A model generated the notes under the pieces. That model saw only the letters and a list, made by a program, of their open reading frames with translations, did not search any database and had not been told where the DNA came from. A program made the position numbers and the translations under genes. A stretch of 24,549 nucleotides of DNA from Paramicrosporidium saccamoebae KSL3 (lineage: Eukaryota > Fungi > Cryptomycota): assembly GCA_002794465.1 (NCBI GenBank), contig MTSL01000121.1, positions 1 through 24,549 on the forward strand. Direction: 5' to 3'. Shown here piece after piece: positions 648 to 24,225 of this stretch. Numbering within the stretch: the stretch's first letter is position 1; every line of letters begins with the position of its first letter.

Positions 648-784
648 CCAATCTGCGTCGTTTAGGGGCAAATTCTATTCGCTGAACATTACCAGGCCAA
701 TAAAGACGTCTTGAGAGGGTTTCTCATTCGATAACACCCGCTGCGACCAATCACAAGGAAGAAGACCAGCTGAAGGGCTATTGG
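648..784. promoter_or_regulatory. Divergent promoter with four CCAAT/ATTGG boxes
   Basis: CCAAT at 648, 697 and 747 and ATTGG at 780, between the divergent ATGs at 574 (-) and 791 (+). Confidence 0.45.
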
Positions 785-3675: not shown

Positions 3676-6600
3676 TTATTTGACGTTGTGCTTCTTGTGG
3701 GTTGCCTCCAAGAGTGCAGCTTCCTTATGAGCGTTACTGGAGCCTTTCAGGTGTTCAATGACCATGTCCCAGATGGAATGATGGTGCTGCTTCATGTCGC
3801 CGATATGCTTCATTGCTGACTTTTGCAACAGGTTGTCGGCAAGCGATACAGCATACTTTTTCAGATCCTCCTTGCTATGCTTTGCAGCAATGGAGGGTGA
3901 TGAACTGTCAGTCACGGGTTTCTGACTTTTCTGCTGTTGGCCGCTGTCAACCGTGGACTTTTCCGTGTGATGTGATGCGTCCACGGGGTGCTTCAATTGG
4001 GCACCAAGACCATTAACTTTGTTGCGCTGCTCGTGAATGGCTTGTTTTTGTGTCGAGAGATCTGTATTGTATTTGTGTGACGAGGAATTTTTAGCCTCGG
4101 AATCCGTAGCTTTCATCCCAGAAAGCAATTGTTCCAAAGAAGCCAGTGTCACTTTCTTGTGCTCAATATCAGGCGCATGAGGATTGTGAATAAGATCACT
4201 CTGAAGTTTATCCCGTAGCTTCTTGGTCTCTTTGATTAAAGTATTATGGGCGGAACAATGAGGGTGGGTGGCACCCGCAGTAGAGCAAAAGAGCGTCTTG
4301 TTCTTGTGGTAGTCGCTAATCATTTGGTCCAACTTGGCTTTTTCTGTCGCAAATTCTGCTTGAAGCTGTTCCCCTGTCTTTGTAGGAGACGGAGCAGCGT
4401 TAGTGGCACTAGACGAATCTGTGATTACTGGCACTATGGTAGTGGCCGTAGAAGCCGGAAGAGCTGAACCGGCTGAATTGGCTGGGGAAGGAGAGGCATT
4501 GGTGTGGGCATGATCCTCCACTTCTTCATGAGTGATAGAGTTTACGTCGTCAATGGCTTTCTGAACCTTGTTAGAAGCGACGTGCTCGTCAGCTTTGGCT
4601 GCTGGAGAAGTTTCCACAGTCTCCAACTTTTGCAACAAGTCCTTGGCCTTTTTAAGTGAAGTACGGACAGCTTTTAATTGCTTTTCAGCGTCTTGATGAC
4701 CAGGCTGTTTGGCAAGGATTTCATTCAGCTTTATGCGATGATCCTTCAAATTGGCTTCAATCTGTGCGACAGTTTGCTTGACCTTGTGAGATGTCGGATA
4801 GACAGTAGGTGGGATGATCAAATTGGTCATGACAGTCAGATCCTTGGCGAGCTGGGCCTCAACGTCAAGGAGATCTTTTTCCGTGTAGAGCGGATGACTC
4901 TTCTTGGTCTCTCTCGCTCTCCGAACCAGATCAATGGCGTCATGAAGATTTTGGTAGACGTAGAGCTCTTTTCTGAATTCCTTCAACTCGGCTCCTTGCT
5001 GTAAATGCAACAGTCTTCCCTTGTTCTTTCCAATAGCCGCGCGATGAATGGCAGCATCAGGGCTGGTCAGTGTAGCATCAGTAGCCGGGATGGCTTGGCT
5101 GGACACTGTAGTATTAACAGTAGAAGCAACTGGACTGGTCACTGTAGTATTGGCAGCAGGAACAACCGGCGCCGCACTGGGCGCTGTAGTAGTTGCGTTC
5201 TTGTAATGACAATCGTGTAATTCAAAACACGCGTGATCGACAAGTTTGCTAATCTCAAAGATGGTGGCCTGGTGTGGTCCACGGATCTGTGAAAGCTTTC
5301 TCATGTAGTACGCAACACTATGAATTGACTTGATAGCATCCTCGGCATTCACGGGTACAATGAATTCACTTTGTGCAAAAAGCTCCCATAGACGATGCAA
5401 GAGGTTGTAAAGTTCTGCAATTGCAGTCTTCTTCTCATTCTCAAGTGTCACTAGAGCTGATTGGTGTCCGCTGGTAATATCTGCAGTGGGCTTGGCAATA
5501 GCATTTTCCTTGTGTTCCAACTCGACGGCGTGTTTTGTGAGAACCTCCAGACTCTTTCTCAAATTAAATTCATAATGCTTCACTTGTTCAGAATGCTCCG
5601 GACCATCCATATGTCCCTTCAGGTGCTGAACAGCCTGCTGTCCTAGCGCCACTGCCTCACGAATTCTCTTCAGCTCTGGGATTCGCCCCAATGCCATAAT
5701 ATGAGCGTCAATGCTCATTTGGATTTCATGAATCTTGGCCCTGACAGTCTTGATCTGTTGTTTGAGGAGGGGGATTGTGTCGTTTGAATGAACTGGCACA
5801 CTTGTTGCGTGGGGAATGTCAGGAACGGGGGCGACAATCTCACTTGCCTCTATCTCCACCGCCTTGTCAAGTTTAGTGGAAAGTTCCTGCTCCACTGTCT
5901 TGCTCTCATTCTCCAAGGCCAAGATTTCTACCGAGGAGAGTCGACCTCCAGCGGCGGAATTATGCTTCTTCAGCAATTCAACAATGTGTCGAGCCAGTCT
6001 CTTGGCTTCCATGATATCTGCATCTTCCTTGTTGGCTCGATGCTTCACGAATCCCTCTGCTTTAAGACGTTGGTAAAGCTCCTTAACTTTTAGCTTGGCG
6101 GCAATGTATTCACTGATCAACTTCTGTCCCTGCACCCGTAATGCCTTCATGGCCCCTTTGCTCTTGTCACGATTTCTCGTCGCCAGTTGCTTTTCAGGAA
6201 CATTTAGAAGGGATTTGACAAGTCCTGTAAGTTTTACAAGATCCTCTCGGGCTTCTTTGATCCATGGTGCATTATCCTTGGCGCTGTAATTTTTCAAAAG
6301 ATGATCAAATGCAACCACTCGTAAAACCAGTTTAAAGTGCTTGGGAGACACGTCAGGTGTCATGAACCCATAGTTCTTTGAGTGCTCACTGAGCTTGGAG
6401 CGAACCTCTTTCACTCTAAGCTTTGCTGCCCTGTACTCGGCCTCTAATGGATTTTCCGGATGCAAGATGGTTTGGTTCCCCGGTAGTTTAGAGCCAGTCT
6501 CTTCAGATACCACAATGGACAACTCTGTTTTGACATTGTGGGCCAGCTGAGCAGTCTCCGCCACCAAAGACTGGGCTTCCGCTTTCTCGGCGGGCGTGGT

Positions 6601-7827
6601 TGCAGTAGACTTGTACAATTTGAATTCACTTTCTGCATTCAACAGATGCTGCTTGGCAGAGCGGATGCTGATCACATCAGGGTCGGATAGAACGTTGAGA
6701 GGTTTTGCCGTCTTGAATTGGGTACCATGCTTCTTGAGTTTGGTCTTGGCCTCCTTGAGCTGCTTAAGGAGCTGATTTGCCTGACTGTGGAGAGCTGTTC
6801 GTTCTTCGTCACTTAATGGACCACGGGACGCTTTAACAATTGCTCCATCTGGGATCGTAGTCAGACTGCTAATATCCTTCCTGGCAGCCGCAATGTGTGT
6901 CTTGGCGGCTATGAAATGTGCATTAGTTGCAACATTAACATGACGCTTGGCAAGACGGCGCTCCAAATCGTAAATGCGGAAGACGACTTTTTCATGTTCA
7001 GGCAGAGCGTATGCCATTCCGAGACGATCGTATATCTCTCTCAGTCGGGTTCTCAACTTTTTGACATGCTCCTTATCAGCATGATATTGCGCTGCAGCAC
7101 TTGCGGGAGCCGGCATAACGGCCAGTGGCTCGTGCTCCGCAAGCTGCTTATAATGCAAAGCAATGGTGGCGGCCAACAAGTTTTCTACGGCCGTTATAGC
7201 TGCAGTAAGGCCAGATTTTACGACAGAGCCCGTCTCTGATACCAATGCGCTCTTGAGGTTTGCATTAACGACTCCGAGGATGTTAATGACTTCTTGTCTG
7301 ATGTGCTTGCCAAGACCTCGTAACGTCGGCGTCGCAGTGACAAGGGCGGCACGTTGGCTCTTTAATTTCTGCAACTCTTCCAAATTTTGAGCCTTTCTCT
7401 TCAAGGCTGTAGCACGATCAGGGAAGAGGGGTGAATTAGTGTGTTGATCGAGTAACTTCCAGATCAGCGCCTTGGCATTGGCAAAATTGCTTTCGGCAGT
7501 GGTGATGGCAGCAATTGGCTCATGGAGAGCCTTGTGGGCGTTTCCAAGATCAGCCATGACGTTACTAGCTGCCGTCATTGTGGTCCTTACACGCTCCGCG
7601 TGGAAGCCGTGGGCGTAAATTGGATCATGCAAATACACACCAAGATGATAGAGGTGGATTTTCTTGTCTTCAATCTGTCTCTGAAGTTCCAAGTATTGTG
7701 TTTTTGCTCCATCGAATGGTTGAGGCGCCATTGACGATGTGGCACAGTCCACACTGACAAGTGCAAACAATAATACAAGGCAACTCCACAAATTCATGCT
7801 CATTGCGATGAAGAATATGGCATTCAA
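3676..7827 (-). CDS. Large (1383 aa) secreted orphan protein with repeated amphipathic helical units and T/A/S/P-rich linkers
   Basis: Uninterrupted 4.15-kb ORF with signal-peptide-like MSMNLWSCLVLLFALVSVDCA (true start may be Met9 or Met11). Rich in A/K/H/L/E, several N-x-S/T sequons, no C-terminal TM segment, no recognisable family motif. Confidence 0.85.
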   Translation of the reverse strand: MNAIFFIAMSMNLWSCLVLLFALVSVDCATSSMAPQPFDGAKTQYLELQRQIEDKKIHLYHLGVYLHDPIYAHGFHAERVRTTMTAASNVMADLGNAHKALHEPIAAITTAESNFANAKALIWKLLDQHTNSPLFPDRATALKRKAQNLEELQKLKSQRAALVTATPTLRGLGKHIRQEVINILGVVNANLKSALVSETGSVVKSGLTAAITAVENLLAATIALHYKQLAEHEPLAVMPAPASAAAQYHADKEHVKKLRTRLREIYDRLGMAYALPEHEKVVFRIYDLERRLAKRHVNVATNAHFIAAKTHIAAARKDISSLTTIPDGAIVKASRGPLSDEERTALHSQANQLLKQLKEAKTKLKKHGTQFKTAKPLNVLSDPDVISIRSAKQHLLNAESEFKLYKSTATTPAEKAEAQSLVAETAQLAHNVKTELSIVVSEETGSKLPGNQTILHPENPLEAEYRAAKLRVKEVRSKLSEHSKNYGFMTPDVSPKHFKLVLRVVAFDHLLKNYSAKDNAPWIKEAREDLVKLTGLVKSLLNVPEKQLATRNRDKSKGAMKALRVQGQKLISEYIAAKLKVKELYQRLKAEGFVKHRANKEDADIMEAKRLARHIVELLKKHNSAAGGRLSSVEILALENESKTVEQELSTKLDKAVEIEASEIVAPVPDIPHATSVPVHSNDTIPLLKQQIKTVRAKIHEIQMSIDAHIMALGRIPELKRIREAVALGQQAVQHLKGHMDGPEHSEQVKHYEFNLRKSLEVLTKHAVELEHKENAIAKPTADITSGHQSALVTLENEKKTAIAELYNLLHRLWELFAQSEFIVPVNAEDAIKSIHSVAYYMRKLSQIRGPHQATIFEISKLVDHACFELHDCHYKNATTTAPSAAPVVPAANTTVTSPVASTVNTTVSSQAIPATDATLTSPDAAIHRAAIGKNKGRLLHLQQGAELKEFRKELYVYQNLHDAIDLVRRARETKKSHPLYTEKDLLDVEAQLAKDLTVMTNLIIPPTVYPTSHKVKQTVAQIEANLKDHRIKLNEILAKQPGHQDAEKQLKAVRTSLKKAKDLLQKLETVETSPAAKADEHVASNKVQKAIDDVNSITHEEVEDHAHTNASPSPANSAGSALPASTATTIVPVITDSSSATNAAPSPTKTGEQLQAEFATEKAKLDQMISDYHKNKTLFCSTAGATHPHCSAHNTLIKETKKLRDKLQSDLIHNPHAPDIEHKKVTLASLEQLLSGMKATDSEAKNSSSHKYNTDLSTQKQAIHEQRNKVNGLGAQLKHPVDASHHTEKSTVDSGQQQKSQKPVTDSSSPSIAAKHSKEDLKKYAVSLADNLLQKSAMKHIGDMKQHHHSIWDMVIEHLKGSSNAHKEAALLEATHKKHNVK

Positions 7828-8016: not shown

Positions 8017-9402
8017 TTATTCGTTCCTTGCGGTCCTCTTCCATTTTTCAAGCAGACTGTCTACAGAGACTGGTTCAGAATGGGGGTTAAATGTAAAGGA
8101 AGTATCACCTCCGTGTGCGATTAACTCCCGGGCGATTCCAATATTTCCAAGATATGCGGCCCACCAAAGTGCGCTTCGTCCATCCTGAGAATGATCATTA
8201 ATTAGCATAGAAAGTCTGTCTTTGGATACTTTTGCACCCTGAAACCAGGAAGTTAGGCTACGCAGACAGTCAAGTGATCCGGCCTTGACACAGGCAAAGA
8301 TGAGCTGGTGATAATCATCAGGAGGCGGGTCAGAATGAGAAATGAGCAATTTAAACGTATTTAGGCCGGGCGGTGAACGCGACAGTTCCAATAAAATATG
8401 ATCCAAAGCTGGCTTGATGCCAGATCTCAAAACAGCTTCAACGACCTTTTCCGATCCCGCCATAATTGCCGAGTGTAATACATCATGACCACAGGAATCA
8501 CGCAACATCCACATACTCGCATCACAGCGATCCATGATGAGCTGGACACATTCTACCGACGAGGAAAGAGCTGAATGATGAAGACACGTCCTCATGGCAA
8601 AATCTCTCGATGACAGATCCGCCTTGTTTTCTATAAGAAACTCGACAACTCTGGGTTGCCCACCACCGCAAGCGTACAATATGGGTGATGAGCCACTTGA
8701 AGAACTTACATAGGCAATAATCTTTGCAAACTTTTCAGGCTCGGATTCGCGAGCTTTTTGCATTACTTGCAAATGTCCATGGTATGCCAACACATGCAAC
8801 ATGTCTCCACGCCCCTCTTTGATTTCTTGAATAAACACATCGGTAGCAGCGTTCTGCCAAATGCGTGTTGCATCTAACGAAAAAGCGACCAATTCTTGAT
8901 AGGTCTGGTATGCGCCATCCGGATTGATTATGGCTACCACGGATTGCAAGCCCGGCCTACCCAACAATGCCGATAATTGCAACTTGTTCAGTCCAAATAC
9001 CACCGGCACTGAGAGCCGGTGCGCCTCAGCTAGCATCTCTCGCCAATCGACACTCCATTCCACATCCACCGCCATAACTAGAAGCCGTACCCGGCCAGCA
9101 CGCAAATGGCGAAGCGACTCTCGCAGTCCACAGACGAGACGCTTCTTTCCACGCTGAGAGTATCGATGCAGAGAAGTGAGCAAGAGATGCAATAGGGCGG
9201 TGGATTGATTTGTCAAGTGTTGAGAACAGTATGCCAGTGGCACACAATGCGTATCATGACGAGTCAGTCGCAGTGAGTAACGAACAAATTCATGTGGGGC
9301 CTCGATATAGCTTATATCTGGCAATTCTGGTGCCAGCTTTACCAACTGAGGCCGTGTCTTTTGCTGAGGGGCAAAATTAATCTGCAGACTCGATACAGGC
9401 AT
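8017..9402 (-). CDS. SECISBP2: SECIS-binding protein 2 (SBP2)-type L7Ae domain fused to C-terminal ankyrin repeats
   Basis: AYCSQHLT...LLTSLHRYSQRGKKRLVCGLRESLRHL...VPVVFGLNKLQLSALLGRPGLQSVVAIINPDGAYQTYQELV parallels recalled SBP2 (DYCSQML...LLKELVRFQDR...KRRLVLGLREVLKHL...IPFVFALNRKALG...VSVVGIFSYDGAQDQFHKMV). About 5-6 ankyrin repeats follow (SPILYACGGGQPRVVEFLIENKAD, RTCLHHSA, HDVLHSAIMAG, GRSALWWAAYLGNIGIARELIAHGGD). Confidence 0.75.
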   Translation of the reverse strand: MPVSSLQINFAPQQKTRPQLVKLAPELPDISYIEAPHEFVRYSLRLTRHDTHCVPLAYCSQHLTNQSTALLHLLLTSLHRYSQRGKKRLVCGLRESLRHLRAGRVRLLVMAVDVEWSVDWREMLAEAHRLSVPVVFGLNKLQLSALLGRPGLQSVVAIINPDGAYQTYQELVAFSLDATRIWQNAATDVFIQEIKEGRGDMLHVLAYHGHLQVMQKARESEPEKFAKIIAYVSSSSGSSPILYACGGGQPRVVEFLIENKADLSSRDFAMRTCLHHSALSSSVECVQLIMDRCDASMWMLRDSCGHDVLHSAIMAGSEKVVEAVLRSGIKPALDHILLELSRSPPGLNTFKLLISHSDPPPDDYHQLIFACVKAGSLDCLRSLTSWFQGAKVSKDRLSMLINDHSQDGRSALWWAAYLGNIGIARELIAHGGDTSFTFNPHSEPVSVDSLLEKWKRTARNE

Positions 9403-16115: not shown

Positions 16116-16190
16116 TATGACGGTGGTGAACTTTCCATATAGAGATATGACAGTGGTGAACTTTTCATATAAAAATGTCATGACAGTGGT
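16116..16190. repeat. Short direct repeat (30-nt unit, about 2.4 copies) spanning the IDO stop codon
   Basis: tatgacggtggtgaactttccatatagaga (16116-16145), tatgacagtggtgaacttttcatataaaaa (16146-16175) and partial catgacagtggt (16179-16190). Confidence 0.8.
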
Positions 16191-17498
16191 AGATTATCCA
16201 TGTGGGAACGGACATTTTTCAAAAATGGTACGGGATTAGATCCACCTGTGCCCTTGACAATACTATTGCTTTTTTGTGCCTGCACTACAATATAGTTGCT
16301 CACCATGGAAAGATGCGTGTTTCTAAAGCTGCGCAGTTTTTGTAGACAGAGATTGTAGGCGTCCTTAATATCCCGCAACATGTCTTGGGAAATGCCTTCA
16401 TCAGTAACCATGGAACGAATGCAAACATTCTCTCCAAGCCATTTCAGCGTGTCACGATGATTTTTGGCCATGTAATTGCGCATGTCGAGAAGATAGGCAC
16501 CGGCAGATGTGACACCTGACTCTCCAATGTGGGAATCTTGAGCTTTGTGATTTACGCCGAGAATTATATCGAGAGCATGTATGACGGGACTTTGGGCTGC
16601 ACTTGCACCGGCGTATTGACGTCCCTCAGTCTCGTCGCCGTAATAGACACCGTCAGGCAGGTTTTCGTCGTTGAGCCATCCTGCCAGCGATCGACGAATA
16701 CGCTGGAAGAACACTGCGGGGATGTTCTCTTCGTACATTCTGCAAAGGATTTCCTCAATCTCGACAATCAATTCAGCAAGCTGGAGGAGGAGTAAATGCA
16801 TTGTTGAATAGTCGAGACGACGAAATGCATTGGCGATCTCGATAGCGGTTGTGAGTACTCTTCCCGACTGACAATCTACGGCAATAGATACTAGATAGAA
16901 CCAAGTCTCGTCAATGGAGCCGCTGGCCGTTAGTATTGTCCACAGATTACTAGATATTAGAAATTCAAGTGCAGTACTCTAAAGAAAGAGGTTCAGTCGG
17001 ATTGACAGGACGAAAATTGAATAGCACGGCGGCGGCATAATTAATAATTGGCAGAATGTCAATAGCCTCGGACACCTTGATCCATGGCTTGGCCAGTCCG
17101 TTAGGGATCCTCTGCCATTATCAAAACGCATTTAGAGGTGATACGTTGAGGGGTTTGTCATGTAGTCGTCCCCGGATGTACGAATGAGCAATAAAAGCCA
17201 GTAAAGTATGTGCCCGCTCACAGGCCAGCCTGTCATTCAAAATTTCGTTGCAATCCAGCTCCGGAAGCTATGCAATAAAGTAGAGAATCATTTATCGGGA
17301 TACATTGTCAATGATACCACGGAGCTTCCCCGACGAGGTCAAGGCAGAAAGGTCCTTGGCAATATCTTCCCATGCACTAAATGCTGGCGGCAGCTTGAGC
17401 TCCGCTCGCTTCAGGCAAGACACGAAGCCATAAACTGGATCCAATTCAAAACGTTGAAATACTTCACCAGCATTAATATACATCTCACTTGGGACCAT
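16178..17498 (-). CDS. BNA2: Indoleamine 2,3-dioxygenase, about 407 aa, 4 exons
   Basis: Exons 17304-17498, 17145-17267, 16978-17111 and 16178-16949 (introns 36, 33 and 28 nt). Motifs YGF...LPPAFSAWEDIA, AHTLLAFIAHSY, DETWFYLVS, SAAQS, MRNYM, FRNTHLSMVSNYI (heme His) and GTGGS. Confidence 0.92.
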
Positions 17499-17528
17499 CC
17501 CCCCGACACCAAGCAAAACCTTTTTTAT

Positions 17529-18127
17529 TTATAGGAATGCCAAGACGCTTTGAGCAGTGCTATTCTCCAATTCGCCTATATCAACTCCGACATATTTTAC
17601 CACGCCATCCTTCACCACCAACGCAAATCGTTTGCTGCGGAGACCCATTCCCGCGGCACTAAGATCTTGCTGCATGCCCAAAAGTTTGGCAAAGTCCCCG
17701 TTACCATCAGCGAGCATTAGCAATGATCCAGCCGACAGTGCGACAGCCCAGTTGGCGAGGACAAACGCATCATTAACAGAGACGACAGCCACAGTGTCGA
17801 TGCCCTTGTCCTTTAGCTTTTGGAACGATTCTACAAAACCGGGAACATGAGGACCTGAGCACTTGGCGGGTTAGAACATTGACGAGACGTACCACAGGAG
17901 AAAAAGCACCAGGAACACCAACCAAGACCACTGTCTTTCCTGAAAATACTAGCCATGAGACAATGTCCGTTCCGGGTACTAGAGTCAGTCGTAATGTTTG
18001 TTGGAAGCGGACATGCCCCGTTCCCTTCAATTTTTGCAGTCTTGAACGTAAATTGCGGTAGCTTGTCACCAACTTCGATCATCTACCAAATTGCACAACA
18101 CTAATTGCATCATACTATGTTGGACAT
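17529..18127 (-). CDS. AHP1: Peroxiredoxin, AHP1/PRX5 type, about 167 aa, 4 exons
   Basis: Exons 18116-18127, 17980-18082, 17893-17948 and 17529-17861 (introns 33, 31 and 31 nt). Spliced active site GVPGAFSPVCSGPHVPGF, plus SVNDAFV, LADGNGDF and RSKRFALVV. An N-terminal Cys (GACPLP) resembles the Ahp1 resolving Cys. The first mini-exon is less certain; Met at 18082 is the alternative start. Confidence 0.9.
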
Positions 18128-18530: not shown

Positions 18531-19472
18531 ATGAAAATGCCGCTAATGATTTTTGCTGTCCTGCTGTGCTTGGGCGCCATATGCAACGCCGCAAAGCATA
18601 TAGCATACGGTCATAAGATTCCTATTTTGACCAAGGGGCTGCTAGATAAACGCCACCGGTATCGTCCCCGTTTTATAATGTACATGGGCAAAATTTGCAC
18701 CTCTTGGGACTTTAAGAATCTTCGGGAAATCGGAGGTGACTCGACCAATTCCGTCTATCTGGCTGAGCATATTAGCGGGGAGTTGGTGGTGGTAAAGAAA
18801 TTCAGTCGAGATGCGAGACCTGAAGGGATTAGGATGGAGGAGGTGGTACTGAACATGCTACACCATCCCGGTTTACCCACAGGCATCTGCGCGTTTAACC
18901 ATGCCAAAGACGCAGTATCGGTTGTCATGAAATACTATGAAGGAGTAAACATGGCTGATTGGCTCAAGACACGAGAGGGCGTCGTTGAAGCGAACCTACA
19001 AAAAATCGTTATTCAACTGGTTGACGTGCTCCTCTTCCTCCACGATCACGCCATCATCCATAACAACATTGTACTGGAGAATATTATAATCGGAAGGGAA
19101 CTTCAGGTGCGGCTGATAGGATTTGAGTTTACGCGATACGCCCCAGATGGAATGAATTTGGAACTTGGAGATATATATAACATGGCTCCTGAAAAACTCG
19201 CTGGCTCGACGTTTCACAATGGAGTTGATTGGTATGGTCTCGGGCTTGTTATATACCAGGCTACAAACAAACATCACCCATTCCATGGCGCAAGGAGCAT
19301 GGGTGAATTGAAAAGGATTGTAAGCGCCGGGCTGCCTCCTATGCACGCCTCGACAGTTAATGACTTGATCTTTAATTTGTGCAATAGCGACCCGGCAGAA
19401 CGATGGTCTCAGTCCAATGGAGACGCTTGGCGGATTAAAGCACATAGCTACCTACAGGTACCCACAGCATAA
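18531..19472 (+). CDS. Secreted protein pseudokinase (array member 1)
   Basis: Signal-peptide-like MKMPLMIFAVLLCLGAICNA. Kinase fold with VVVKK and MEEVVL, but catalytic loop HNNIVLEN (no Asp, no Lys), GFE in place of DFG, and degenerate G-loop IGGDSTNS. MAPE and DWYGLG are retained. Confidence 0.85.
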   Translation: MKMPLMIFAVLLCLGAICNAAKHIAYGHKIPILTKGLLDKRHRYRPRFIMYMGKICTSWDFKNLREIGGDSTNSVYLAEHISGELVVVKKFSRDARPEGIRMEEVVLNMLHHPGLPTGICAFNHAKDAVSVVMKYYEGVNMADWLKTREGVVEANLQKIVIQLVDVLLFLHDHAIIHNNIVLENIIIGRELQVRLIGFEFTRYAPDGMNLELGDIYNMAPEKLAGSTFHNGVDWYGLGLVIYQATNKHHPFHGARSMGELKRIVSAGLPPMHASTVNDLIFNLCNSDPAERWSQSNGDAWRIKAHSYLQVPTA

Positions 19473-19696
19473 ATCATCCAACTGTTTCGGACCCAATACA
19501 GCTGCTTTCCATTTTGTACGTGGTGAACTACTACATGTTTAAGGAATAATAAACATCATTGGTCGATACGATCAGATGGAAAAATATCTCTATAAGAGAC
19601 ACTATGCCCACTAAAGCGACTCTCAATTAGCGTGTGCGATAAAAGATTCCTGTACGTAGGTTGGTGTGGCACCATCGGCTCGCTCTGATTGTTATT

Positions 19697-20767
19697 ATGT
19701 ATTGTAAAGCATTCATCTTGGTTGCCACAACACTTTTTGGTGCTTTGGCATCTCGCTTCCTTGAAGATAAGCATAAAGAGTCACCTTCCGTCTCAACCAA
19801 TGCAAAAAATATCGAATCTTCTATGCCGGCGGTTAAGACGCCATATGAAGATGCGTCGTTATTAGCTCTGCTGAGTATGCCAAAGTCCAAGCTTGTCACC
19901 TCCAACGGCGGCTATAGCCCGATGTTTCCCAATCATAACGGCCAAACGTGCCGCGCCGATGATTTTACATTACTACGGCTCATAGGGAGAGGAAAGACAT
20001 CTATAGTCTATCTAGCGAGCCACACTAGCGGCCAAGTGGTGGTAATCAAGAAATTTAGCAAAACGTCCCTGGGAGTACTATATAGTATTGAATATCTTCA
20101 GAGGGAAGAGGCGATTCTGCATAAATCGGACCATCCAAACATTCCAAAAGGAATTTGCACCTACATAGACGAGGACGATATAATGTTGGTGATGGAATTT
20201 AAGGCTGAAACGACGCTGTTAGACTGGCTTAGCATGAAATGGTCCTGGTTCCGTGATGTGAAGAATCTACATTTCTTTGTGCGGCAAATGGTCGACGTGC
20301 TCAAGTATCTTCATGGCTTGAACATTTTGCACAATGACATCAAACCAGCCAATATTATCATGGCAGGAGATGGCACCATACAGCTGATTGATTATGGAAT
20401 CGCCAGATATGCACCGGGAGGAATGAAGGGAAGAGTCGGCACGCCAGTCTTCATGCCACCTGAGAAACTCGAAAACTTTCACTTTACCAACGCCGCAGAC
20501 TGGTATTCACTCGGCGTGATCCTCTACCTGATAGTCGCGGGAAAGCATCCGGCGTCGATGGCAATGAACACGGAAGAATTATTAACGGCCATAAAAAGGC
20601 CGCCAGAAGAACCACTATCTCCTCCAGTGATCAATAGGTTTGTGGGTATGCTTTTACACCCCGATCCGAAACGACGGTGGTGTCCTGCCAACAATAATCT
20701 TGACAAAATGGAGTGTCATCCCTTTTGGAACTTGACCAAATCTCTGCAGCGAAAGAGTGCACTTTGA
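19697..20767 (+). CDS. Secreted Ser/Thr protein kinase (array member 2)
   Basis: The first ATG is at 19697 (the track start at 19661 is TTG), giving MYCKAFILVATTLFGALA. Motifs IGRGKTSIVY, VVIKK, REE, HNDIKPAN, DYG, GTPVFMPPE, DWYSLG and HPFW. Confidence 0.9.
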   Translation: MYCKAFILVATTLFGALASRFLEDKHKESPSVSTNAKNIESSMPAVKTPYEDASLLALLSMPKSKLVTSNGGYSPMFPNHNGQTCRADDFTLLRLIGRGKTSIVYLASHTSGQVVVIKKFSKTSLGVLYSIEYLQREEAILHKSDHPNIPKGICTYIDEDDIMLVMEFKAETTLLDWLSMKWSWFRDVKNLHFFVRQMVDVLKYLHGLNILHNDIKPANIIMAGDGTIQLIDYGIARYAPGGMKGRVGTPVFMPPEKLENFHFTNAADWYSLGVILYLIVAGKHPASMAMNTEELLTAIKRPPEEPLSPPVINRFVGMLLHPDPKRRWCPANNNLDKMECHPFWNLTKSLQRKSAL

Positions 20768-21039
20768 GTCTCGACCATCCACTAGTTCAATAAAAGTACT
20801 AGAGCGATTGCCAAGGACATATGGAATGCCCAAGACAGTTCAGCCTATCTGGTGCTGAGGACACAAAGGCCAGTCTATCTGATGAGACTCGAACTTAATG
20901 ACATGAACGGATCTGCCCGTATCAATACCCGTGATTTAATAGCTCAACTTTAGAACCTACCACCCCCCCCCCATCATAAATAGTCTGCGGTATCATCGCT
21001 ACTATGCACCAGTTTCTAATTGGTCTGGTTTTAATTAAT

Positions 21040-22035
21040 ATGCACTGTGGACAGCTCATCCTTCTTACTGCAGTATTTTCCAATGTTTCAGCATCTCACT
21101 TTATTGGGGCGCTAGATGACACTGCACCGGCGGCTTCGTCATTGTATGAAAAGGAATCTTTAGCGACTCTGCTAAGTATGCCGATTGAAAGATTTGTCGC
21201 TGCCGATGGCACTTATATTCCAATGTTTCCAAACTACCAAGGACGACCATGTGATCCTAGTGACTTTACAATAATTGAACAACTCGGAGATGGAAATACT
21301 TCCTTGGTGTTCAAGGCTATACATTCTAAAGGCGAGTACGTGGTGGGCAAGGTATTCAGGAGAGAATTTGAATGGGGTATCTCGGACTTTGAATTCCTCC
21401 GAATGGAGGAATTAATCTTGCATAAAGGAGACCACCCGAGCATTCCAAGAGGAATCTGCACTTTTAAAGAAGATCGTCGCATAGTTATTATAATGGGATT
21501 CACTACCAACATGACGATAGAACAATGGCTTGGTACAAGCAGATTCAAAAACGCGGCAAACCAGCGCTTCTTTGTGCAGCAAATGGTCGACGTACTACAA
21601 TATCTCCATGGTCTGGACATTTTGCACAATGACATCAAGCCGGGAAATGTTCTCCTGGCCGAGGACGGCACCATACAACTGATTGACTTTGGACTTGCGA
21701 GACATGCACCCGGAGGAATGAAGGCGGATATCGGCACGCCGATCTACATGCCACCCGAGAAGCTTCAACAATCTCATTTTAACAATGCTGCAGATTGGTA
21801 TTCATTTGGGCTTCTCCTCTACGAACTTTTTACCGGACATAACCCGTTCTCTGATCTAGATACCCGGGAGGAATTATTGCAAGCTGTTGCGTGCACTCAA
21901 TTCGAGATAGCCTACTGTTCGATCACTAGCGATTTTGTAAACATGCTACTACAAAAGGATTCAAATCAACGGTGGTGTCTAGCCAACCAAAACCTGGGAG
22001 AGATGAAAGGTCATCCTTTCTGGGATCTACAGTAA
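21040..22035 (+). CDS. Secreted Ser/Thr protein kinase (array member 3)
   Basis: MHCGQLILLTAVFSNVSA (alternative in-frame ATG at 21004). Motifs LGDGNTSLVF, VVGKVF, MEE, HNDIKPGN, DFG, GTPIYMPPE, DWYSFG and HPFW. Clear nucleotide-level paralogy with member 2. Confidence 0.9.
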   Translation: MHCGQLILLTAVFSNVSASHFIGALDDTAPAASSLYEKESLATLLSMPIERFVAADGTYIPMFPNYQGRPCDPSDFTIIEQLGDGNTSLVFKAIHSKGEYVVGKVFRREFEWGISDFEFLRMEELILHKGDHPSIPRGICTFKEDRRIVIIMGFTTNMTIEQWLGTSRFKNAANQRFFVQQMVDVLQYLHGLDILHNDIKPGNVLLAEDGTIQLIDFGLARHAPGGMKADIGTPIYMPPEKLQQSHFNNAADWYSFGLLLYELFTGHNPFSDLDTREELLQAVACTQFEIAYCSITSDFVNMLLQKDSNQRWCLANQNLGEMKGHPFWDLQ

Positions 22036-22345: not shown

Positions 22346-22462
22346 ATCGTCCAGGGCCGCTCCTCAGAGCGTACAAATCTTTCGCCTTTTACTAAAGATT
22401 TCCGTGGCGGGTGGCACTTTTAACTGGACTGACCCAATTTTTTTGGCCGTCCACAGGATGGC
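22346..22462 (+). ncRNA. U5: U5 spliceosomal snRNA
   Basis: Invariant loop I GCCTTTTAC (22384-22392) within AAATCTTTCGCCTTTTACTAAAGATTTCCGTGG, basal stem GTCCAG/CTGGAC, Sm site AATTTTTTTGG, and 3' hairpin GCCGTCC-aca-GGATGGC. Confidence 0.95.
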
Positions 22463-22561: not shown

Positions 22562-22906
22562 CTAGTCGCCGTACTTGAGCTTGCGGAATAAATTGAATGT
22601 TGTCGGGTCCAAGTCGGTGGATTCGTTTAAATGACGTACTGTCAGCTCTGGACTCGAGCCATTTGGGTGTCTTAGCGACCTTACACTGGTACTTGTAGCA
22701 CTTTCGCTTTCGTGCCCAGTGACCTGCCTCTGGAACACCATAATGCGCTCATGGCTCTCCATAAACGGGTCCCGAAACTGCAGCCAGTTCTTAAAATTGG
22801 CATCCACATCCATTGCGGCTCGCTCGAGACGACGCTGGCTCTCCGTCTGCCGCTCTGCTTGTTCGGCCTGTTGTTTCTGGAGCAGTAGGGCATCTTGGAA
22901 GCGCAT
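22562..22906 (-). CDS. Hypothetical small protein with N-terminal coiled coil
   Basis: 114-aa ATG-started ORF filling the gap between SIL1 and U5, with a Q/E/R-rich helix (LQKQQAEQAERQTESQRRLERAA). No family recognised; exon structure uncertain. Confidence 0.5.
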   Translation of the reverse strand: MRFQDALLLQKQQAEQAERQTESQRRLERAAMDVDANFKNWLQFRDPFMESHERIMVFQRQVTGHESESATSTSVRSLRHPNGSSPELTVRHLNESTDLDPTTFNLFRKLKYGD

Positions 22907-22922
22907 GCAGACTATTTAGAAT

Positions 22923-24080
22923 TTATTTTATAAACTTTTTACAAAAGGCAACGATGTGAGGGAAGCGGGGCGGGATGTGGGGCACTTCAGAGTGACAAAG
23001 GGGTTGGAAGGACATGGCCAAGGATTCGTCGAAATGGTCGTGGGCTGATGGGAGATGGCGTTCTAGGAGAACCAACGGGTCATCGTGATGTCCAAGCGGC
23101 TCCTCGCGGGCCAGCGCTGCTAGGAACACCATGGCGCGTTCAAAGATGAAATGGTCAACCCCGCGGATGAGAACCTTGTCCAACACATCAAAGCCCTGCG
23201 CATTGACAAACTGATACCGAGTGCCAGCCATATTCAGCTCGGCCATGTTTGCCAAAATGGCCACAATTCGCCTCAAAATCTGTGAATCAGTCTCCACACG
23301 CAACTTTGACACAATTGTGGCAAGGTGATTGCTCATCAAGACGCCTTCTACCGCCGATGGGTTATTGTGCACGGAAGCCGAAATGATAGTGGCCGCAATT
23401 AATCGGGTTTTTCGACTTTCGTCACCCAGAAGGATTACCAAATTGCCGAAATTGCTAGCATGTGTTAGTGCTGCGCCCACGGAAATTTGATGGGCTTCCT
23501 CGTCAAGCGCCTCAAGGGTTTGCTGCTGGATGGACGAGTCAGAGGAGAGGATTCGGTCTAGCTGCTGCTCTATAATAGTCTTTTCCGGAGGACTGTGGGC
23601 GTTGTCAGTTGGAACGGGCATGGGCAAGTGCTTCTCTTCATCTGTCTTGGGCTGGTGCTTCCGTGCCATTCTCTGGCCAGATTTAAAGTCGAGTTTTATA
23701 TCCAATCCATGGGGGAGAACAGCATCGGCAGGAATTTCTTTCCACTCGTCAGTTGCTTCGAAATTTGCACCCGTCTGCGCATTATGCGAGTCGTTATGAA
23801 GCTCGGGATGTTCGGAGTGGTCGAAATGACCATGTGCGACGTTGCGCATTTCCTCGGCGACATGGTTTATACCATGATGGTCATGCATGTGCTGACTATC
23901 TTTCTCAGCTCGCATATATTGTCCACGGTTGCTCTTACGCAGAAAAGTCACTGTCAAACCACATCCGATAAGCAGGCCCACGATAATGTAGAATAGTCGA
24001 CGTCCTCCTAAGCGAGAACTTCCTGTCCTTACTGAGACATAGCCGACGTTGTGCATCTTCTTTGTAGTCTCACGGTTCAT
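22923..24080 (-). CDS. SIL1: SIL1-like ER nucleotide exchange factor for BiP/Kar2
   Basis: SIL1 N-terminal motif FEATDEWKEIPADAVLPHGLDIKLDFKSGQRMAR and ARM-like repeats (LEALDEEAHQISVG, AATIISASVHNNP). The start is uncertain (ATG at 24110, 24080 or 24056; the track start is GTG). Confidence 0.8.
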   Translation of the reverse strand: MNRETTKKMHNVGYVSVRTGSSRLGGRRLFYIIVGLLIGCGLTVTFLRKSNRGQYMRAEKDSQHMHDHHGINHVAEEMRNVAHGHFDHSEHPELHNDSHNAQTGANFEATDEWKEIPADAVLPHGLDIKLDFKSGQRMARKHQPKTDEEKHLPMPVPTDNAHSPPEKTIIEQQLDRILSSDSSIQQQTLEALDEEAHQISVGAALTHASNFGNLVILLGDESRKTRLIAATIISASVHNNPSAVEGVLMSNHLATIVSKLRVETDSQILRRIVAILANMAELNMAGTRYQFVNAQGFDVLDKVLIRGVDHFIFERAMVFLAALAREEPLGHHDDPLVLLERHLPSAHDHFDESLAMSFQPLCHSEVPHIPPRFPHIVAFCKKFIK

Positions 24081-24225
24081 TCGGGTATTGTTAGCTTTTA
24101 CAGGGATCATCACCTGACACACACCACAAAGCTCGAGGCCCGGTTCGTTCCGTGTAGTCTTGGCATATTTTTATTGGTTACTACAGCATCGACGAATCAG
24201 AGGGCGGTAATTGTAGCGACGCTCC

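Follow-up and report, generated by a model that had tools for sequence, protein, structure and literature searches.

In two microsporidian species, signal peptides or transmembrane segments are over-represented in expanded kinase families, and Anncaliia algerae encodes adjacent Pkinase proteins with signal peptides, KCZ79029.1 and KCZ79030.1 (Reinke et al. 2017, PMC5423893). In four further microsporidia, a survey of the kinome reported no eukaryotic protein kinase (ePK) with a signal peptide (PMC4280135). Signal-bearing kinase expansions have already been predicted in the broader lineage, and the concept is not new. Here we describe a tandem cluster of three kinase genes, K1, K2 and K3, at positions 18531 to 22035 of a 24,549-nucleotide stretch of the Paramicrosporidium saccamoebae KSL3 genome (contig MTSL01000121.1, forward strand), which we call the window. 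An earlier examination of its letters alone (the sequence-only reading) had pointed to a fungal-relative intracellular parasite, and this is what the organism is: P. saccamoebae belongs to the Rozellomycota, is an intranuclear parasite of amoebae and sits naked inside the host nucleus (PMC5701793). That reading had also suggested that such a kinase family was undescribed, which holds for the P. saccamoebae genome paper, where "secret", "signal peptide" and "effector" do not occur and kinases appear only under nucleotide metabolism (PMC5701793), but not for the microsporidia, whose signal-bearing kinases had been reported (PMC5423893). In the literature searched we found no description of the family itself, of its tail-less PKA-like design, of its pseudokinase member or of its presence in Rozellomycota.

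We favour, and give an even chance of being right as a whole, a reading in which K1-K3 form a tandem cluster of lineage-restricted, tail-less PKA-like kinases that are secreted by a cleavable signal and whose active members phosphorylate host proteins. The three genes would be a tandem-duplicated cluster of a small Ser/Thr kinase family whose members most likely enter the Paramicrosporidium secretory pathway, guided by a short N-terminal signal peptide that is cleaved off. Once mature, the protein would begin with a variable disordered linker, continue with a conserved extension of ~45 residues with a Y-x-P motif and one Cys, and close with a canonical core that stops where AGC kinases begin their regulatory C-terminal tail (C-tail). 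The destination would lie outside the parasite cell, where active members may phosphorylate host proteins; it is most likely extracellular because the parasite grows inside the nucleus of its host amoeba, and a released kinase would there meet host nuclear proteins and ATP. The genes, their domains, the state of their catalytic sites, the family with its tandem arrays and the presence/absence difference at the syntenic site are observed directly; signal cleavage, secretion and host targets are steps that we infer.

The genes of the cluster are:

18531-19472, plus strand: K1, 313 amino acids (aa); Pfam Pkinase match at residues 62-306 (window 18714-19448), E 4.4e-29; GenBank PSACC_01713.
19697-20767, plus strand: K2, 356 aa from the first ATG; Pfam Pkinase E 3.3e-45; unannotated in the GenBank record.
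21004-22035, plus strand: K3, 343 aa, or 331 aa from the second ATG at 21040; Pfam Pkinase E 1.1e-44; unannotated in the GenBank record.

Against Pfam Pkinase (PF00069), K1-K3 score 102-155 bits at a cut-off of 31.7 and align from model position 2 to positions 253-261 of 263. Because each open reading frame (ORF) matches the model nearly end to end, the genes are intronless, so that the three same-strand intronless paralogs seen in the letters stand as real kinase genes. A profile of the wider family, compared with the PDB, returned PKA catalytic subunits as its first ~55 matches (2e-55), with position ~64 of the profile aligned to PKA residue 30 and the alignment ending near PKA residue 300; an alignment to PDK1 ends at PDK1 residue 295. 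In AGC kinases the C-tail begins near PKA residue 300. K1-K3 end 3-15 residues past H-P-F-W (K2 and K3) or H-S-Y-L (K1), and the AGC tail with its turn and hydrophobic motifs is absent, in agreement with the sequence-only reading. Individually, K2 matches PDK1 best among PDB sequences (6.7e-26), and K3 matches yeast PKA TPK1 (2.9e-36), its next matches being mammalian PKA-C, PDK1 and the RSK N-terminal domain. Foldseek matches of the fold were Aurora, PKA, ULK1, PDK1 and DAPK, and the best 60 PDB sequence matches and the best 50 fold matches were AGC, Aurora, ULK and CAMK kinases, with no ROP, FIKK or Fam20-type entry among them. The family is an AGC (PKA/PDK1-like) offshoot without the tail that defines the group; AGC had been among the parent groups suggested beforehand.

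The kinase domain had also been described as bare. Its core is indeed complete, but a conserved extension of ~45 residues stands ahead of it. In K2 this element is:

19829-19963, plus strand: pre-kinase extension of K2, residues 45-89; Y73, P75 and C85 invariant across an 18-sequence and a 25-member alignment; predicted local distance difference test (pLDDT) score 76-95; ratio of nonsynonymous to synonymous substitution rates (dN/dS) 0.27.

Structure models of K1 and K2 (AlphaFold2, AF2), based on an 18-member family alignment, are confident and have the same layout: a helix at the N-terminus, then a linker without order, then the ordered extension and, last, the whole kinase fold. For K2 (mean pLDDT 87.8) the helix covers residues 2-20, disorder spans 22-38, the ordered extension occupies ~45-89 and a full bilobal kinase follows; for K1 the mean pLDDT is 90.4 and the kinase fold is complete.

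The extension recurs in a family that extends beyond P. saccamoebae. An exhaustive profile search over 1.84 billion representatives recovered the GenBank model of K1 (P0242) and ~16 single-domain proteins of 260-363 aa, and a word-indexed search, run as a second route, added P0241 and P0243. Every one of the ~20 members beyond K1-K3 is from a metagenome assembly (Logan or JGI), and no protein from a named genome is among them; one member, P0401 (JGI/Logan), lies on a contig of 91,177 bp. Specific to the family are an invariant Y-x-P and Cys before the core, a Cys in beta4 and R-W-x-x-x-N near the C-terminal end. In a 25-member alignment, from which our catalytic-site table was also drawn, C85 occurs in 22 of 22 members and the beta4 cysteine, C154, in 20 of 22, and PDK1 has no Cys at either aligned position; we infer a disulfide between the two. 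K1, K2 and K3 each bear all four features of this 300-380 aa class, namely the signal-like N-terminus, Y-x-P...C, the beta4 Cys and R-W-x-x-x-N. Long proteins with 2-10 kinase domains among the top profile matches were rejected, since they carry none of the family-specific motifs and owe their scores to summed domains. A metagenome scan with a back-translated generic catalytic-loop pattern returned only ordinary kinases, at 24-37% identity, and missed even the known members on contigs L002 and L008.

Tandem arrangement on one strand recurs elsewhere in the family: contigs L089 and L091 carry three members each and L092 two, and L008 has two with a P-loop kinase gene between them. Contig L002 contains the final part of a K1-like gene and, after it, the K2 ortholog P0241 (L002 244-1392; 60% identity to K2 over 377 aligned residues, 64% over 328); the K1-then-K2 order is therefore conserved in another organism. 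Member copy number differs between contigs. The linker between N-terminus and extension is highly variable in length across the family, and at residues ~40-75 of P0241 it contains three ~12-residue tandem repeats that are not in K2.

Each gene of the cluster opens with a hydrophobic segment:

18531-18590, plus strand: signal-like segment of K1, residues 1-20; cleavage predicted after C-N-A (CNA/A).
19697-19750, plus strand: signal-like segment of K2, residues 1-18; predicted cleavage A-L-A/S-R-F; uncharged span 5-19.
21004-21093, plus strand: signal-like segment of K3, residues 1-30 from the first ATG or 18 residues from the second (21040); predicted cleavage V-S-A/S-H-F.

The best 8-residue Kyte-Doolittle means of K1-K3 are 2.4-3.4, compared with 0.4-2.0 in six other proteins of the window, and K1 reaches the top of this range (3.40). 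Small residues occupy positions -3 and -1 in all three (CNA/A in K1, ALA/S in K2, VSA/S in K3), so that the hydrophobic signal-like N-termini of the sequence-only reading are borne out. Across the family, 19 of 19 distinct full-length members have a signal-like N-terminus (best 8-residue mean 2.08-3.95, as against 0.36-1.96 in the six controls). The hydrophobic cores, of ~8-15 residues, are shorter than membrane anchors, and the A-x-A/S-R junction is conserved among paralogs and orthologs: the A-L-A-S-R of K2 is kept in P0241 and P0243, and the N-terminus of K3 aligns with those of K2 and P0241. Past residue 45, K1-K3 contain no transmembrane-like segment, as had been proposed (the best 19-residue window, 1.0-1.6, falls inside the kinase core), and their C-termini have neither a K/HDEL motif nor a hydrophobic tail of the glycosylphosphatidylinositol (GPI) type.

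Entry of the K1-K3 family into the secretory pathway is in our judgement probable. It is supported by the 19 of 19 signal-like N-termini, by the lack of an alternative start in K1 and by the conserved junction; the two family-specific cysteines also speak for it, in that they suggest a disulfide, as does the lack of an endoplasmic reticulum (ER) retention motif, a GPI-type tail or a second hydrophobic segment. Disulfides are typical of lumenal or extracellular proteins.

If the true starts lay downstream, the hydrophobic N-termini would be untranslated and K1-K3 would be ordinary cytosolic or nuclear parasite kinases in tandem. K2 and K3 do have internal Met codons before the core. K1, however, offers no such alternative: its only Met codons before Y-x-P...C are M1, M3 and M6, all N-terminal to the hydrophobic core. 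Moreover, the 19 full-length members that begin with a hydrophobic segment are spread over many contigs, and no housekeeping AGC kinase is known to lack the C-tail. The 20 signal codons compared between K2 and P0241 have a dN/dS of 0.47, and of 21 residues 13 are identical; the N-terminus is therefore coding-like and does not resemble a 5' untranslated region. Taken together, these observations make downstream starts extremely unlikely. The frame of K2 opens at 19643, stop to stop, and from a TTG at 19661 it would give 368 aa.

A further possibility is that the N-terminal segment is an uncleaved signal anchor that tethers the kinases to a parasite membrane, whether of the ER, the cell surface (plasma membrane) or an organelle. 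In some members the uncharged N-terminal span reaches 19-22 residues (K1 3-21, P0356 3-24, P0427 1-21), AF2 renders the segment as a single continuous helix of ~18-19 residues, and charges flank it on both sides, which leaves its orientation ambiguous. Most cores, however, are only 8-15 residues long and are succeeded by small -3/-1 residues and the conserved A-x-A/S-R junction, and a disordered linker comes directly after the segment. We regard anchoring as very unlikely, and a cleavable signal remains the reading that we carry forward.

Whether secreted members could phosphorylate anything depends on their catalytic sites. The sequence-only reading had treated the three kinases as one class; K2 and K3 do keep their catalytic residues, but it had overlooked that K1 has the marks of a pseudokinase. 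K2 has the beta3 Lys, the alphaC Glu, H-N-D, the Lys and Asn of the catalytic loop and D-Y-G, and K3 is likewise complete, with H-N-D and D-F-G. K2 and K3 are accordingly predicted to be active kinases, and of the non-RD type, since the catalytic loop reads H-N-D. The activation loop carries a Thr in 18 of 23 members, K2 and K3 included, a Ser in four, and an Asp in K1.

In K1 the catalytic loop reads H-N-N-I-V...N instead of H-x-D...K...N, and G-F-E takes the place of DFG. The substitutions comprise catalytic Asp to Asn, catalytic-loop Lys to Val, DFG Asp to Gly and activation-loop Thr to Asp; only K1 among the 23 members has lost the catalytic Asp, and only there is the DFG Asp replaced (by Gly). 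The first three of these substitutions make K1 a predicted pseudokinase. Its C-terminal 51 codons, compared with the K1-like fragment in L002, have a dN/dS of 0.23, and K1 is therefore a maintained gene under purifying selection and not a decaying copy. It is possibly a partner or scaffold for the neighbouring kinases.

K2 and K3 are the closer pair, as the sequence-only reading had noticed from their DNA. Protein identity is 48% between them and 31-33% between K1 and either of the two. At the DNA level they share 79% identity over 256 nt (blastn, E 1e-59) and 60% overall, the most similar part running from the catalytic loop to the APE region:

20273-20527, plus strand: K2 copy of the DNA block common with K3, catalytic loop to APE region; repeat family D1, 255 nt, 78% identity.
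21568-21822, plus strand: K3 copy of the block; same repeat family D1.

No common motif was found in the DNA upstream of K1, K2 and K3.

K2 and K3 appear unannotated. In the GenBank record no gene is called at the position of K2, nor over the part of K3 that the locus covers. The exact K2 and K3 sequences, with either start, are missing from a collection of 15 billion proteins, and the profile search that did recover P0242 yielded no alternative model of either. An exact look-up of K1 likewise gave no match, because GenBank holds only a differently spliced K1. That model, PSACC_01713 (P0242), has 277 aa (window 18537-19438), takes the second Met as its start and splices out a short stretch as an "intron", a splice that swaps the conserved R-W...N...H C-terminal part for an out-of-frame tail. 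The intron is spurious, since the unspliced ORF retains all four invariant residues (R, W, N and H). The annotation was made with repeats masked by a RepeatScout library and with RNA from spores only; either could, as a conjecture, explain why K2 and K3 are missing from it. Because two of the genes seem unannotated and the third is mis-spliced in the public annotation, surveys based on proteomes would have overlooked the family.

Selection on the cluster can be gauged from the comparison of K2 with P0241, for which dN/dS is 0.28 overall and 0.25 in the kinase core, with the value given above for the extension. In the linker it is ~0.9, and the linker is free to vary. Neither this comparison nor that of the K1 end with the L002 fragment gave any sign of pervasive positive selection.

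The surroundings of the cluster were compared with those in relatives found through CPSF73, at 79-84% identity in Logan assemblies and 68% in GCA_047514055.1. A block running DnaJC9, large ORF, Ank/L7Ae, CPSF73, ADK, Elp4, IDO and Redoxin is kept in these relatives. The array itself lies between two syntenic anchors:

17529-18082, minus strand: Redoxin (peroxiredoxin-like) gene, Pfam Redoxin 3.6e-12, in two ORF pieces; left anchor.
22349-22462, plus strand: U5 spliceosomal small nuclear RNA (snRNA) gene, Rfam RF00020, 81.9 bits, full-length match; right anchor.

In the window the U5-to-Redoxin distance is ~4.26 kb and is occupied by exactly the three kinases. In the close relative represented by contig L004, the U5 snRNA gene (668-783, minus strand; 88% identity to that of the window over 138 nt) lies ~150 bp from Redoxin (937-1490), the small ORF beyond K3 is also there, and the kinase array is absent between U5 and Redoxin. 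The array is thus a presence/absence difference between close relatives, due to gain in P. saccamoebae or loss in L004. Two candidate features in the relatives were discarded: a terminal 199-aa minus-strand ORF of contig L003 is spurious, being the opposite strand of the Redoxin gene (orthologous pieces at 182-759 of that contig), and the 22-aa fragment with which L004 ends does not represent a kinase N-terminus.

An accessory, host-facing role would agree with the expansion in tandem and with the presence/absence difference that separates close relatives. Both observations bear directly on another explanation, in which the kinases enter the secretory pathway and act on the parasite's own secreted, spore-wall, polar-filament-like or surface proteins, in the ER/Golgi lumen or at the surface, much as Fam20C and VLK do in animals and WNG kinases in Toxoplasma. 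The evidence from the signal, the cysteines and the architecture is common to this explanation and to the main one. In addition, purifying selection (dN/dS 0.23-0.28) suits housekeeping-like substrates, and the sole annotated member, K1, owes its gene call to an annotation for which spore RNA was used. However, an array missing from an otherwise collinear close relative, together with varying copy number, would be unusual for core biogenesis; no ER-retention motif is present; and the family is unseen among the best matches in Rozella, chytrids or annotated microsporidia. We consider substrates of the parasite's own to be unlikely on balance. Release of the kinases to the host, to which we return, has in our estimate slightly less than an even chance.

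Several observations weigh against this host-directed reading. AGC kinases normally need the C-tail for activity, and we have to assume that K2 and K3 are active without one. In 11 of 23 members, K2 and K3 not among them, an Asp or Asn stands in place of the DFG Gly (D-F-D, D-Y-N etc.), a change that is uncommon for active kinases; the Mg-binding Asp is kept. The second cysteine of the putative disulfide is missing in two members. The signal call is a heuristic, built on Kyte-Doolittle hydrophobicity and the -3/-1 rule with negative controls from within the window, and a start at the internal Met of K2, at residue 43, would keep the conserved motif. A dN/dS well under 1 amounts to ordinary purifying selection, unlike many host-directed effectors. 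The supplements of the genome paper have no entry for PSACC_01713 or its neighbours, and hence no expression record there. The published RNA is from spores only.

The genes around the array are ordinary eukaryotic ones, encoding a thiamine pyrophosphate (TPP) enzyme, DNAJC9, CPSF73, adenylate kinase, Elp4/PAXNEB, IDO, redoxin and a SIL1-like protein; for CPSF73 (P0121) the named relatives are chytrids and Rozella. A foreign origin of K1-K3 was considered and rejected, as their GC content and that at third codon positions (GC3) fall within the range of the neighbours and the flanking genes are of fungal type. Because their base composition matches that of neighbouring genes, K1-K3 look native, with no hint of recent foreign origin.

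Some features of the neighbourhood deserve mention in their own right. The two Redoxin ORF pieces are ~38 nt apart (17793-17830), and the gap is probably a short intron. The GenBank model merges Redoxin and IDO into one 504-aa product (window 16178-18082, minus strand), and the two are called separately in three relatives. The U5 snRNA gene lies just 3' of K3 and is conserved far above the flanking coding sequence. On its other side, a small conserved ORF of 114 aa without a Pfam domain (22562-22906, minus strand) has a 51% identical ortholog in L004 (265-633) and lies 16 nt downstream of the SIL1-like ORF (22923-24122, minus strand), whose strand it shares; near the N-terminus of the SIL1-like protein is an internal hydrophobic stretch. 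Further away, a 461-aa protein (8017-9402, minus strand) joins a ribosomal L7Ae/L30e-type domain to ankyrin repeats, an unusual combination that is kept in relatives (L004 10103-11542, L005 2539-3978). A 1,383-aa ORF without a Pfam domain (3676-7827, minus strand) has at the same syntenic spot in three relatives a counterpart of ~1,030-1,110 aa, also without a Pfam domain (L003 11330-14635, L004 12087-15182, L007 12497-15820).

Almost nothing is known about host manipulation by Rozellomycota and early microsporidia-like parasites. A small family of kinases with export signals, some predicted active and one predicted dead, would offer tangible candidates for the effectors of a parasite that lives in amoeba nuclei. 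The family would also exemplify an AGC-type core that works without its C-tail, which should be of interest to kinase structural biologists. The role of the C-terminal hydrophobic motif, which to our knowledge serves every other AGC kinase, might here be taken over by the Y-x-P extension, stapled to beta4 by the disulfide. The full combination, in which such constitutively active tail-less PKA-type kinases are released into the amoeba nucleus as a set of active kinase and pseudokinase and rewire host phosphorylation, is a decidedly unlikely one to hold in every part.

How the family relates to known systems depends on which of its parts is compared. PKA-C and PDK1 are its best sequence relatives and share its fold, a core ending in an H-P-F-like motif and a Thr or Ser in the activation loop, which 22 of 23 members keep. 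In contrast to them, the K1-K3 family has no C-tail and possesses a signal-like segment, a non-RD H-N-D loop, two cysteines of its own, Y-x-P before the core and R-W-x-x-x-N near the end. The metazoan kinases Fam20C, VLK/PKDCC and Four-jointed likewise bear a signal sequence, operate within the secretory pathway or extracellularly, and are disulfide-stabilised; their folds are atypical and highly divergent, whereas K1-K3 are canonical AGC-type ePKs. The microsporidian kinases of Reinke et al. come from the closest lineage and also form families with targeting signals, a likeness that is drawn from their description and not from sequence, and no NCBI-named microsporidian protein is among the family-level matches.

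The kinases of Toxoplasma (ROPK, with ROP18 and ROP5) and Plasmodium (FIKK) resemble the cluster in architecture only, as no specific sequence or fold kinship was found among the best 60 PDB matches by sequence and the best 50 by fold. K1-K3 are much smaller, lack the N-terminal helical extension of ROPK and the N-terminal export region of FIKK type, and their secretion is only predicted. What unites the three systems is an intracellular parasite, an ePK joined to a signal peptide, a lineage-specific expansion in tandem and a mixture of active kinases with pseudokinases. If the stapled-extension reading were true, the Paramicrosporidium family would represent an independent reinvention, in the fungal lineage, of the ROP18/ROP5 strategy.

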